DNA of 64,000 bases from Macrostomum hystrix. Taxonomy: Eukaryota; Animalia; Platyhelminthes. Of the stretch, positions 54,471-64,000 are shown in pieces. The position numbers and the translations under genes were made by a program. The stretch spans positions 2,666,001-2,730,000 of the forward strand of contig CATNEN010000005.1 of assembly GCA_950097015.1 (NCBI GenBank), given 5' to 3'. How positions within the stretch are numbered: the first letter of the stretch is position 1; every line of letters starts with the position of its first letter. The notes beneath the pieces were generated by a model. The model had not been told where the DNA came from, did not search any database, and saw only the letters and a program-made list of their open reading frames with translations.

Positions 54471-54910
54471 GGGGCTTCTAGGACAAAAATAATCGCAGCC
54501 TCCATTATCCACAAACCATTACTTTTATTATTCCCGAAGAGATCAGGAAAAAAAGGGTCCCCGCCCCTCTAAAAACTCCGTCTCCGTATTCTAAATTCTC
54601 TACTTTTAATATCCCACATCAGTTTGTAAGTTGAATATCTAGGACAAAAATTATCGCAGCCTCCTTAATGCACAAACCATTACCTTTCCTGAAGGAACAA
54701 GGTTCCCCCGCCAAAAAAAAATACTTTCCAGTTTGTGAGTTGCACATCTTGGACAAAAAAAATTATCGCAGCCACTCCCTAAGAGATCATGCACAAAATA
54801 GCGAAGCTGCAAAAAGCGTGCCAAGACAATCAAATTAGCACTAAAATCCCAATCAAGACCCCAAACCTTGGGTGCTCATCCTCCGAAAAAAAATTAAATT
54901 CTTATTAAAA

Positions 54911-55159
54911 ATGCTCCCAATCGTCTCTCCAGGATCTTATTACAAAAGTCATGAGCCTAATTACAAGAGTAAGTACCAATGCAAAAAAGAATGCAGCGAG
55001 TACATGAAGAAATATTGTCCCAACGTCGATATCAATGTCCCTAATATTAATCTATCAGTCAAGAGTCACTGGTTTCATAAGTATGGAGCAATTATAAAGG
55101 ACTACGACAGCTACTATAACTTTGCAGAAATCATTAAGCAGCTTACATTCTCTCAATGA
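54911..55159 (+). CDS. Small unknown viral ORF, 82 aa, Tyr/Lys/Cys-rich
   Basis: AAAAATG start as in the other viral genes; overlaps the minor-capsid stop by 17 nt. Confidence 0.55.
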   Translation: MLPIVSPGSYYKSHEPNYKSKYQCKKECSEYMKKYCPNVDINVPNINLSVKSHWFHKYGAIIKDYDSYYNFAEIIKQLTFSQ

Positions 55160-55943
55160 TCAACGTCAATACAAACTCTTCACCGTTGAAATCAACGCCA
55201 ACACCATCTTCCGTCTCAAACTGCAGCACAATCTCGTGAATCTCCTTATTACTTAGCACAACTCTTTTCACTGGATTTGGTTTCTCTACCAGCATCTGTC
55301 CTCCAGCAACAGAGTTTGAGATGTTGTACAAAATATTCGTTCGCTTTCCCTTAAACACCCAATCAAGACTGAGATTACTTCTGATTAGAATATTCAAACC
55401 CTTTACAATGTCTGCGATATTAGGTGCTAAGAACAGACCGCTTTTATACACTTTCTTCTCGAATCCCAATTCCCTATACCATGTGTCATCTTTAAATTCA
55501 ACCTCAGCATCTTTGTGAACTTGCATGACCACTCTCATTACAGTGAGATCATAGGATAGTTTGACAGGGAACAGTTTCTGCTCTGGCTTACTCGCATTGG
55601 GTGTCTCAAAATGGCCTCTTTTAGTAAAAACACTTTCTAGAAAGTAATTGTAGGTATCCACACTTTGCGTGCTCACAGGGAATACCACAGTTTCTGCTGC
55701 TGCTACACCTTTCCATTTGTAATGAAACTTATTATTTGCTGCTGTCACATTGGGAACGTTTGACCAACCAGTGAAGTCGTTAAGATATACATGGTAATTA
55801 GCACCTGGATCCAGACGAATCGCCTGCTCTAATTTTTCAACAAATATCCCGTTTGCGTCATTAATTCGCCCAGCTATTGTAATAGGAATGCTCTCCTTAG
55901 AGTGAGAAATAATATTATTTAGTCTTTCAGCAATCGCTTCCAT
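55143..55943 (-). CDS. Minor capsid (penton, single jelly-roll) protein
   Basis: 266 aa, beta-rich. N-terminal SNVPNV...NNKF and C-terminal ETEDGVGVDFNGEEFVLTLII resemble Polinton/PLV minor capsid motifs; adjacent to the MCP. Confidence 0.75.
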   Translation of the reverse strand: MEAIAERLNNIISHSKESIPITIAGRINDANGIFVEKLEQAIRLDPGANYHVYLNDFTGWSNVPNVTAANNKFHYKWKGVAAAETVVFPVSTQSVDTYNYFLESVFTKRGHFETPNASKPEQKLFPVKLSYDLTVMRVVMQVHKDAEVEFKDDTWYRELGFEKKVYKSGLFLAPNIADIVKGLNILIRSNLSLDWVFKGKRTNILYNISNSVAGGQMLVEKPNPVKRVVLSNKEIHEIVLQFETEDGVGVDFNGEEFVLTLIIERM

Positions 55944-55968
55944 TTTTTTTAGCCCCGAAAAAAAATAT

Positions 55969-61365: not shown

Positions 61366-61764
61366 TTATTTTTTCAGCCCTAAAATGATTTCTTTGTAAC
61401 TCTTTCGGGTGTGGGTCATTGCATACAAAACAGTCATACATAGCTCACCACAAATATCACTGTTAAGCCCTTGGAGTATAAAATCTGAGCGGTATATTTT
61501 ATGTCTCATATGAGTCATATAATTTCTCAGTTGTTCGGGTACAGCAGTTCCATAGCTATCAAAGTAATAGTACTTGTGTTTACGGTTCGGATCAATTACC
61601 CAACAAACCCAATGAGAACCTGGCTTTTCTGCAGGGTCAAAGTTCATGATTCCACATTCTTTTTCTAGTGGGGTTTCTGGCAGTGTGTCCTTCATAAAGA
61701 CGCCTCTGAAGTTTGGGATTTTTAATTGCTGAGCTAGCTCTTCTAAATAAATATTGGTTGTCAT
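61366..61764 (-). CDS. Adenain-like (adenovirus-type) cysteine protease, 132 aa
   Basis: GSHWV (His), YFDSYG (Asp) and LQ...DICGELC (Gln, Cys). ATG at 61764 follows an A6 run. Confidence 0.92.
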   Translation of the reverse strand: MTTNIYLEELAQQLKIPNFRGVFMKDTLPETPLEKECGIMNFDPAEKPGSHWVCWVIDPNRKHKYYYFDSYGTAVPEQLRNYMTHMRHKIYRSDFILQGLNSDICGELCMTVLYAMTHTRKSYKEIILGLKK

Positions 61765-61794
61765 TTTTTTACAAATTTTTTGTAACAAATTTTG

Positions 61795-63999
61795 TTACAA
61801 ATTATTTAATCTATAGTGTCCAAATGGTAGGCTGTTAATGTTGTCATCAAAGATATGTCGTTTGTTATCGGCACCTGAGAGGCCTATCTTCTTCTGTTGA
61901 ATTGTGTGAATGTTGTGGTTCTTAGACTGCAGTTTCATAAATTCATGGGTGGTGTTTTTATTATTGATCAATGCGTCCTTGTATGAAGCTTCATGGAGAT
62001 CGTTTTTAACAACATGTTTTGGGATTCCTTTTGATTTTTTAATGGTAGACTTACAACTTTTTACAAAATAGGACTTTGCCCTCAAACCGATAAACTCTGT
62101 AATGAGGGTGCCAGCCGTTTCATCCTTCATTTTTCCTACAACTTTTTGATTTCCAGTGTCGCGTACTTGATCACCTTTCAAAGTCTTGAAGGACTCTGGA
62201 TATTCGGATAGGTCATACAGATGTTTTTGATTCAACATGTCCTGATAGACATCCTCAGTCTGTATGTTTAGAATTAGGGAGTCTGTGTCAGTATATAGAA
62301 GTTTCAGTTGTTCACCATATTGCCGCTTCATGTCATAGAAGAATTTATACATCAGACGCTTCGACTCATCGAGTACAGTCACACCTGTGAATATCGGCTT
62401 GCATAGGGTAACTTTAGTCTTATAGAACAGTATGGCACCCAAGTAATCATTAAAGATATGAAGCTCTTTGAAAGTGGGCTTTGATAAACTTGTCTGAATA
62501 GTACCAGGCTCATAACAGGTAACGAGCTTCAGGTTCGTGCGGTTGCGTTCGTTTTCTAGGGTCTTGCCATAGACAGAGTTGTTTGCAAGCTTGAACAGGT
62601 CCTTGTCAAAGCTGTTTGTTGCTTTAGTTCTAAACTGGGTGTTTTTTTCTATGTATGGCTTCATCCACGCTTCTTCTGTGAATGCGAGAGCCCTGTGAAC
62701 TTTCGTGACCCTACAGCCTAGGGAGATAAAATACCGCAACAGTTTGTAGTGGATTTTATAGCGTGTCTTGTTCATGAGATTTTGTGTTAACTTTTTCACA
62801 CGCTCTTTTTCTTTTTCAGATAGCTGCCAGCTTCCATCATTGTACTGGATTATCTTTGGACAGTTAATGTTCTCAGGGAAGGGGGCAAAGTCAGAAAAAT
62901 TGTCGTGAAGTTCCCTTGGGATTTCAACATCAACTTCATAGATCGCAGGTATTGAAAAGTCGAGTTTATAAGTATCTAGCCACCTAAAATCTCTAACAGG
63001 TAAATCTTGGCTCATAGCCCAACCATAGAGGTTGTTGGCATCCAGATAAATGATGTAGTTTGAAGGCTTTTCTTTATCATAGTCTTCTAGATACGGATTG
63101 TTCGCCTTTGCATACCTATGGACACAAATAGAGATGCCACCTCTCTTAGATGAATCTATAAAGTTGTACATGTCTATGTCTGTAAGCAGCTCGATGTACC
63201 AGTTGGGATTTTGATCCCATTTCATTTTAAGCAATGATTCCCAACTGGTAGCAGGCAAAGACACATAATGAGCAGGGTCAAGACCATAAGCAGAGTACCA
63301 GGTCTTTCTAAAGGTTTCAAATACATCAGCTAGAAGAAAGACATCAGTCCAAAGGTAAAGCATGTGATAATCAAGAAAGTTTCGACAGTTAAAATGTTTG
63401 TAAACAGTCTGAGCATGCTCATAATCTTCATCAGAAATCCCAGAGTTTGTTAGCTTTGAAAAGAACTTGTCCTTGGGTGGTAGTGGTTCTGCAAAGACGT
63501 GATTACATTCATAAGGGTAGACACCTTTCTTTCTAAGAAACTTAAATGAATCTGGGGTTCTAGGATTGAGGGAATCTGCCAGCATCTTGGTATAAGTACA
63601 TTGGTCATCGGTGAGATTTTTACTCAAAGCATCGAGACTGGCGGCCAGAAACTGGAATGAATCTTTGATCTTAATCTTGCCTGAATCTCGCTTAATATCA
63701 ATGCACTTGAACTTTTCTTTGTTCTCTGCGATGCAATCTAGTTTAATGCCTGGTATCATACCCAGCTTCTCAACCAATAAGTGATAATCATATCCCCTTC
63801 CGTTATGGAAGAAAACGGTAAGGTCGCGGATGTTTTTCTGAAGTTTCAGATTACAGGTGTTATGAGCTGCCCCTCTAAATTTTCCTGTGAAGTGATCGTG
63901 GTCTCTGACTGTGTGGTTTTTGACGTCGCAGGGTGTTAATAGCTTTCGGCAAATGTGACAATGAGTTGCAGATCCGAAGTCGATTTCATCTTGATCGGA
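61795..63999 (-). CDS. Protein-primed family B DNA polymerase (5'-truncated by the window; at least 734 aa)
   Basis: The frame is open to the window edge. Motifs: CHIC...VRDHDHFTGKFRGAAHNTCN (EndoVII-like Zn segment), FHNGRGYD (ExoII), YLWTDVFLL (ExoIII), YLDANNLYGWAM, KLANNSVYGKT and YTDTDS. Confidence 0.96.
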   Translation of the reverse strand, partial: SDQDEIDFGSATHCHICRKLLTPCDVKNHTVRDHDHFTGKFRGAAHNTCNLKLQKNIRDLTVFFHNGRGYDYHLLVEKLGMIPGIKLDCIAENKEKFKCIDIKRDSGKIKIKDSFQFLAASLDALSKNLTDDQCTYTKMLADSLNPRTPDSFKFLRKKGVYPYECNHVFAEPLPPKDKFFSKLTNSGISDEDYEHAQTVYKHFNCRNFLDYHMLYLWTDVFLLADVFETFRKTWYSAYGLDPAHYVSLPATSWESLLKMKWDQNPNWYIELLTDIDMYNFIDSSKRGGISICVHRYAKANNPYLEDYDKEKPSNYIIYLDANNLYGWAMSQDLPVRDFRWLDTYKLDFSIPAIYEVDVEIPRELHDNFSDFAPFPENINCPKIIQYNDGSWQLSEKEKERVKKLTQNLMNKTRYKIHYKLLRYFISLGCRVTKVHRALAFTEEAWMKPYIEKNTQFRTKATNSFDKDLFKLANNSVYGKTLENERNRTNLKLVTCYEPGTIQTSLSKPTFKELHIFNDYLGAILFYKTKVTLCKPIFTGVTVLDESKRLMYKFFYDMKRQYGEQLKLLYTDTDSLILNIQTEDVYQDMLNQKHLYDLSEYPESFKTLKGDQVRDTGNQKVVGKMKDETAGTLITEFIGLRAKSYFVKSCKSTIKKSKGIPKHVVKNDLHEASYKDALINNKNTTHEFMKLQSKNHNIHTIQQKKIGLSGADNKRHIFDDNINSLPFGHYRLNNL

Positions 64000-64000
64000 C

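Follow-up and report, generated by a model that had tools for sequence, protein, structure and literature searches.

A probable Polinton/Maverick-type element with unbroken visible genes and a rarely sampled capsid type

Introduction

[quoted passage not shown] Their open reading frames (ORFs) are dense and intron-less, they end in a repeat-bearing non-coding terminus, and they lie inserted in repeat DNA. An RVE integrase also belongs to the published Polinton definition (PMC4028283). Here we analyse a stretch of 64,000 nucleotides (nt) from contig CATNEN010000005.1, called the window below, whose positions 54475-64000 we read, with a probability of about 0.8, as the left 9.5 kb of a Polinton/Maverick-type (polintovirus, adintovirus-like) element integrated in an animal-type genome. 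The segment has all of the features named above in common with Polintons, apart from the integrase. It differs in that its capsid and penton proteins fall in a small clade, and in that no relative found is more than 46-49% identical to its polymerase. The capsid type is a rarely sampled one.

The Alpha group of the Adintoviridae (PMC8502044) resembles this element in being animal-associated and in encoding a pfam03175-type PolB, an adenain, an FtsK-type ATPase, a hexon-like DJR protein and a penton. The class-typical accessory genes of that family are PLA2X in Alpha and GasderminX or Cupiennin in Beta (PMC8502044), whereas a Pfam search (E<=0.1), which tests at the profile level only, found no PLA2-, gasdermin- or cupiennin-type gene among the five ORFs of the present element that have no assigned function (o1, o387, o133, o242 and o211). 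The capsid protein also sets the element apart, being 428 amino acids (aa) long as against 590-663 aa in the matched adintovirus entries of BFVD, to which it is 9-11% identical.

Mavirus-type virophages share with this element the penton fold (6g41/6g42), the four-gene morphogenetic module and a pPolB, and mavirus has an integrase as well. In contrast to the virophages, the element described here lies in an animal-like host context with no sign of a giant-virus helper, its polymerase groups with animal Polinton polymerases, and identity amounts to 11-12%. The likeness to adenoviruses extends to detectable relatives of the penton base and of adenain, and to the logic of protein-primed replication and protease-driven maturation. 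However, the capsid proteins encoded here are much smaller than those of adenoviruses, the genome integrates in a transposon-like lifestyle, and the polymerase has no sequence-level match to adenovirus polymerase structures.

Gene set and class assignment

The features of the element, with the evidence for each in brackets, are as follows.

54475-54910, no strand: left terminal non-coding region, putative terminal repeat; exact end within 54400-54480
54911-55159, plus strand: o1, small basic Cys-containing protein, 82 aa from ATG (open ORF, A-run start)
55143-55943, minus strand: predicted penton (minor capsid protein), single jelly-roll, 266 aa (AlphaFold2 model and Foldseek)
55969-57255, minus strand: predicted major capsid protein, double jelly-roll, 428 aa (Pfam, relatives, fold matches)
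57286-58449, plus strand: o387, charged, Q/P/S-rich protein, 387 aa (in-frame 15-nt repeat at 57982-58048)
58467-58868, plus strand: o133, small basic protein, 133 aa (three G-x-G-[L/F] motifs)
58912-59063, no strand: 21-nt tandem array of about six copies, in the long spacer upstream of the ATPase gene
59116-59916, plus strand: genome-packaging ATPase, A32/FtsK-HerA type, 266 aa (Pfam, PHROG)
59944-60672, plus strand: o242, coiled-coil protein, 242 aa (in-frame 21-nt repeat at 60209-60270)
60705-61340, plus strand: o211, membrane protein, 211 aa (hydropathy scan)
61366-61764, minus strand: adenain-like (Ulp1/C5 clan) cysteine protease, 132 aa from ATG (Pfam, PDB)
61795 to the window edge at 64000, minus strand: pPolB, 734 codons visible (relatives, motifs)
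63811-63966, minus strand: endonuclease VII/His-Me finger-like insert in the polymerase, directly ahead of the Exo II motif

The visible half holds a full virion module (major capsid protein, penton, ATPase and protease) together with a Polinton-type pPolB, all of it unbroken. A pPolB, a DJR major capsid protein (MCP) with a penton near it, an FtsK/A32 ATPase and an adenain-like protease were thus all found, and this gene set fits both the published Polinton definition (PMC4028283) and the adintovirus definition (PMC8502044). The Polinton/adintovirus-like identity with a full virion module, which had been proposed in an earlier note on this DNA made from the letters alone, is therefore upheld. 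That note gave its list of hallmark genes as established; the list lacked the RVE integrase, one of the components that define a Polinton (PMC4028283), and needs correction in this respect. No RVE integrase was found in 54475-64000 by Pfam, and one is expected beyond 64000.

We identified the polymerase through its Pfam-bearing relatives because searches against solved structures, both with the sequence and with a 14-sequence profile, gave no match. The visible polymerase fragment alone falls below PF03175 in a Pfam scan. Over its full visible length, it is 45-49% identical to proteins of 1,140-1,280 aa, which extend 349-522 (mostly 440-520) residues further upstream. PF03175 is present in 10 of the 14 aligned polymerases, and Exo II, motifs A, B and C, and KxK are invariant or nearly so across all 14. 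Relatives number more than 6,500 at the 90% cluster level, and those with names (42-45% identity) belong to snakes, a sea anemone, a snail and mussels. Judged by these relatives, the polymerase is of the archetypal pfam03175 kind, termed Alpha by Starrett et al. (PMC8502044).

The insert in the polymerase matches PF02945 (E 8e-5) and the PHROG endonuclease VII family (E 1.8e-4), and such an endonuclease VII-like insert is common to the aligned animal Polinton polymerases, 13 of the 14 carrying PF02945. Polinton pPolBs have been mentioned in general terms as carrying homing-endonuclease inserts (PMC11161782), and the insert at 63811-63966 fits this description; among the papers listed in a literature search, none paired 'Polinton' with 'endonuclease VII'. 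Adintovirus polymerases have an OTU-like domain at the N-terminus, a region that lies off-window here, and no OTU domain was detected by Pfam (E<=1e-3) in 13 full-length relatives of the polymerase. The published assignment of this domain was made by structure prediction (PMC8502044).

The packaging ATPase was recognized by the Pfam family Pox_A32 (E 4.1e-6; its 26.9 bits exceed the cutoff, 22.8) and by the PHROG terminase/packaging family (E 8.5e-8). Its Walker A and Walker B motifs are readable in the translation, and a search against solved structures gave nothing usable. The protease scored 22.8 bits with Peptidase_C5, above the cutoff of 21.3, and E 0.0019 with Peptidase_C48. Its best PDB match was adenain 1avp (E 0.004), with which the catalytic His and acidic positions align; the Cys region lies outside this alignment, and the Cys was read from the sequence alone. 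If TTG at 61788 is taken as the start, the protease is 140 aa long.

Major capsid protein and penton

The MCP matched the Pfam family DJR-like_dom (PF21738) with an E of 4e-5 and 23.4 bits, which is under the cutoff of 27. The same family was above the cutoff in eight of eight close MCP relatives (43-78% identity) and in the distant relatives that were scanned. We modelled the protein with AlphaFold2 from a nine-sequence alignment and obtained a model of low confidence (pLDDT 53.9). With this model, a Foldseek search of BFVD returned 87 matches at E<=1e-3, almost all of them DJR capsid proteins, from sources that included adintovirus, MELD virus, adomavirus (LO7), virophages, giant viruses and tectivirus-like phages. 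TM-scores for these matches were 0.3-0.42, and identity to the BFVD adintovirus capsids was the 9-11% given above. Since the matches are nearly all DJR proteins and the TM-scores and pLDDT are low, the model supports the membership of the MCP in the double jelly-roll fold class, whereas structural detail lies beyond its reach.

The penton gene is located directly downstream of the MCP gene. The penton model (pLDDT 66.8) matched the mavirus penton 6g41/6g42 first in a Foldseek search of the PDB (E 5.6e-7), followed by adenovirus penton bases and the Sputnik penton, and the top 31 fold matches were all pentons from these three sources (mavirus, adenoviruses and Sputnik). Against BFVD, it gave 40 matches at E<=1e-3 to minor capsid or penton proteins of giant viruses, mavirus, MELD virus and adomavirus (LO5). 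The earlier note had proposed that 55969-57255 and 55143-55943 be compared with jelly-roll capsids, and to the extent that the models can be relied on, the expected DJR and penton fold matches were obtained. PHROG searches with the capsid, penton and protease gave no matches.

Gene layout and coding signal

Nine complete ORFs and a tenth, the polymerase ORF, which is open at the window edge (64000), lie within 54475-64000, and the visible part of all ten contains no stop and no frameshift. ATG-to-stop ORFs of at least 120 aa account for 0.876 of 54475-61794, whereas 200 shuffles averaged 0.005 and peaked at 0.112. The ORF analysis and the shuffles thus agree with the earlier count of nine complete ORFs and an open PolB without stops or frameshifts. 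Successive spacers between genes measure 25, 30, 17, 247, 27, 32, 25 and 30 (or 6) nt, and the o1 and penton genes overlap at their 3' ends by 17 nt, much as had been described (gaps of mostly 17-44 bp and one 17-nt overlap) except for the spacer of 247 nt. This sole long spacer, the others being 17-32 nt, contains the 21-nt tandem array at 58912-59063.

The ORF starts have a uniform context, in that all nine complete ORFs begin with an ATG directly preceded by 4-7 A's. Counted over its two strands, the element has 362 ATG trinucleotides; AAAA precedes 13 of them, and 9 of these 13 are the nine ORF starts. The A-run start context therefore provides an independent coding signal, which extends to the five ORFs without assigned function. 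The spacers are 72-93% A+T, and a T-run of 8-9 nt is present at -19 to -22 of the penton, MCP, ATPase and o211 genes. These spacers with A-runs and T-runs may constitute a compact promoter or initiation signal, perhaps a lineage-specific one. We also considered the T-runs as trans-splice acceptors and dropped this idea, as a pyrimidine tract plus AG ends only two of the nine upstream regions. Antisense ORFs such as 58524-59051 and 56566-57267 were set aside as by-products of repeats or of genes on the opposite strand.

Terminus, junction and flanking DNA

The left end of the element coincides with a change in base composition, the GC content falling from 0.56-0.63 to 0.36-0.46 across 54400-54480. 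A 50-nt direct repeat follows, whose copies at 54477-54526 and 54638-54687 are 90% identical (chance expectation, 0 matches), and a third copy of the repeat core (16-20 nt) is found at 54754-54773. The first ~430 nt of the element contain no ORF. This repeat-bearing non-coding end, the left one being the only end within the window, resembles the terminal repeat region of Polintons and is a putative terminal repeat. Polintons have terminal inverted repeats and a 6-bp target site duplication, and an inverted partner of this terminus would lie at the off-window end.

To the left, the element is contiguous with 54 kb of eukaryotic, repeat-rich DNA that contains about 30 minisatellite arrays, spliced-looking host exons, a tRNA-Lys and retrotransposons. 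Together with the GC step at the junction, this flank supports integration of the element in host-type DNA. A tblastn search with all ten products found no second copy in 1-54474. One feature of the flank bears on the nature of the host:

20332-27095: BEL/Pao LTR (long terminal repeat) retrotransposon with a single open 2,009-aa ORF at 20645-26674

The ORF of this retrotransposon contains Peptidase_A17, RT, integrase zinc-binding, DUF1759 and DUF5641 domains. Retrotransposons of the BEL/Pao group occur typically in animals, and the presence of one in the window, together with the animal-type polymerase, supports an animal-like host, a broader assignment than the probable flatworm genome of the earlier note. 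Its LTR stretches (at least 254 nt; 20332-20585 and 26842-27095) are 100% identical, and it is therefore a very recent insertion.

Directly beside the element, the left flank at ~53800-54470 contains pieces with RNase H-like and Cys-rich tail character in different frames with several stops. These ORF pieces had no Pfam match, and we interpret the flank as the 3' portion of a non-LTR retrotransposon that has decayed. The region thus holds both old mobile DNA, in this adjoining decayed retrotransposon, and very recent mobile DNA, in the BEL/Pao element with identical LTRs.

Alternative readings of the element

Several observations weigh against the assignment of the segment to an integrated Polinton or limit how far it can be taken. 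With the integrase, the N-terminal part of the polymerase, the other terminal repeat and the target site duplication all off-window, both class and completeness are judged from half of the element. Confidence in the two structure models is low to moderate (pLDDT 54 and 67; TM-scores 0.3-0.45), and the window's own MCP and polymerase score below the Pfam cutoffs, their membership being assigned via close relatives. With a single copy in the window, age cannot be measured from the divergence of copies or repeats. The earlier note called the element apparently intact; this holds for the visible part, where the ORFs are unbroken, but not for the element as a whole, because the parts just named lie off-window.

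It is unlikely, in our judgement, that the element is not integrated at all, that is, that a free adintovirus-like genome or an insertion from another organism was misjoined to this contig, or that the whole contig is a contaminant. In favour of such a reading, an exact look-up of two host and eight element ORFs found none of them among 15 billion proteins, which leaves the window without support from an independent assembly, the nearest capsid relatives come solely from short metagenome or run assemblies, and Starrett et al. documented adintovirus contigs derived from contaminating organisms (PMC8502044). The GC content also changes abruptly at the junction, but such a step is expected for any insertion, and the junction falls at the start of the repeat-bearing non-coding terminus, where the end of an integrated element is expected. 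The flanks are eukaryotic and rich in repeats, and integration of Polintons into repeat DNA is normal. The three tandem arrays within the element resemble those of the flanks, which lends weak support to its residence there. A different question is whether the segment should be called a Polinton at all, or instead a polinton-like virus (PLV) or a mavirus-type virophage. Among solved structures, the penton indeed matches the mavirus penton best, and capsid proteins of virophages and PLVs are among the fold matches. However, the fold matches have 9-18% identity and are spread over all DJR viruses alike, whereas the polymerase is of the animal Polinton type, with its 45-49% identity to polymerases in animal chromosomes. 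The pairing of an adenain-like protease with a Polinton pPolB is the one seen in Polintons and adintoviruses, and the flanks, with their BEL/Pao element, are animal-like. We therefore regard the PLV or virophage reading as very improbable.

Whether an integrated Polinton at this site is also young is a separate matter. The visible ORFs comprise 8,643 coding nt, in which a stop would arise from 4.6% of the possible substitutions. If the copy decayed neutrally, all ten ORFs would remain open with a probability of at most 0.05 beyond ~0.3-0.75% divergence, depending on the assumed indel rate. As no disabling change is present despite this bound, the copy is either recent or held open by selection, and the evidence in the window fits both. 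The case for the young insertion proposed earlier is the lack of any disabling change over 8.6 kb of coding DNA, but continued selection predicts the same. An integrated element that is not young would have its ORFs kept by selection, through co-option or through re-copying of a master element, or it would be a transposon-only copy that makes no particles. Open frames alone fit purifying selection as well as they fit a recent insertion, and the relatives of the capsid and penton keep full-length proteins, which indicates selection on the lineage. On the other hand, co-option usually keeps one or few genes, while here ten adjoining ORFs are open, five of them lineage-specific, and compact spacers and start contexts are intact as well. 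Moreover, the BEL/Pao element with its identical LTR stretches attests to recent mobile-element activity in this genome. We consider an older or particle-free copy to have a small probability, similar to that of a misjoined or contaminating sequence.

A rarely sampled capsid lineage

Of 1.84 billion representative clusters, a profile search with the capsid protein matched 480 at E<=1e-3 and only 20 at E<=1e-30, and two close clusters are full-length. Word-based searches recovered eight relatives of the capsid (43-78% identity) and 13 of the penton (54-83% identity). All of these capsid and penton relatives are unannotated and lie on contigs of less than 4 kb in metagenome or run assemblies. 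The capsid genes thus fall in a rarely sampled clade, in line with the suggestion in the earlier note that the lineage may be undescribed.

By sequence comparison, a virion module of a thinly sampled clade is joined here to a mainstream polymerase, and module exchange of such a kind has been described for adintoviruses (PMC8502044). Insertions of Orthopolintovirales in rhabditophoran flatworms have already been reported in a preprint (10.1101/2025.04.19.649669). We tentatively raise the possibility, to which we give somewhat less than even odds, that the element belongs to an undescribed animal polintovirus lineage at the level of genus or family, which would combine an Alpha-type polymerase with a rare pair of small capsid and penton proteins, an accessory set of its own and a uniform start context. 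Its accessory set may consist of a membrane protein with two PSAP motifs, a sigma-1-like coiled coil and a basic protein with terminal glycine motifs.

ORFs without assigned function

Five ORFs (o1, o387, o133, o242 and o211) had been listed as having no confident function, and our searches leave them in that position. The small o1 protein had no Pfam or PHROG match, and o387 had no significant match to Pfam, PHROG or PDB.

No match was found for o133 in Pfam or PHROG. Its three G-x-G-[L/F] motifs were not equalled in any of 2000 shuffles (0/2000 reached three), a count to be read with the knowledge that the pattern was chosen post hoc. Two of the motifs are situated within a 7-residue repeat near the N- and C-termini. 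These terminal motifs may, by analogy, recall precursors that are trimmed at both ends by adenain-type proteases, and o133 is a candidate for a protease-processed virion core or accessory protein, subject to the post hoc choice of the pattern. A generic scan for adenovirus-style cleavage patterns gave scattered and unconvincing matches. The protein also contains a short Pro-Leu-Ala repeat run.

For o242, the Pfam matches were exclusively of coiled-coil type and below the cutoff, a PHROG minor head protein family matched with an E of 7e-5, and a weak PDB match to the reovirus sigma-1 coiled coil was seen (E 0.0027). Coiled-coil matches are often compositional, and o242 might be a fibre-like protein.

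The o211 protein consists of a Pro-rich N-terminal tail, a hydrophobic stretch of about 40 residues (residues 82-120) and a helical C-terminal part, and has no significant Pfam family. Two PSAP motifs, at residues 11 and 18, are located in the Pro-rich tail ahead of the hydrophobic stretch, and they appear to resemble late domains.

Proposed mode of propagation and implications

Going by the protein families involved, the polymerase would copy the linear element, with replication starting from proteins attached to its terminal repeats, and an off-window RVE integrase would insert copies into the genome. Trimers of the capsid protein, with pentons at the vertices, would form an icosahedral shell into which the ATPase would package the DNA. 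The protease would mature precursor proteins, for which o133, and perhaps o387, are candidate substrates. Expression would probably proceed from the very compact A/T-rich spacers.

Polinton copies with all frames open lend themselves to the question whether such elements are viruses in addition to being transposons. The capsid clade is represented in databases only by short unnamed fragments, and for it this copy, whose visible genes are all unbroken, serves as a clean annotation template and establishes a link to an animal-type genome. The compact spacers and the uniform start context provide a descriptive clue to the expression of such elements. The element leaves the current picture of Polintons unchanged. 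Its host association becomes an added data point only if the host is identified, and flatworm insertions have already been reported in a preprint (10.1101/2025.04.19.649669).

Other features of the window

Besides the BEL/Pao retrotransposon, the host flank contains the following features.

9284-14614: F-box and WD40 exons
17331-17403: tRNA-Lys(CTT)
27327-29303: Las1-like exons
50502-50969: pseudouridine-synthase-like ORF, weak

The BEL/Pao element, at a GC content of 0.57-0.60 compared to a background of 0.30-0.50, is situated just upstream of the Las1-like exons. Three short-unit tandem arrays occur within the Polinton-type element, at 57982-58048 (15 nt), 58912-59063 (21 nt) and 60209-60270 (21 nt), and they echo the roughly 30 minisatellite arrays of the host flanks, whose units are 11-41 nt long.

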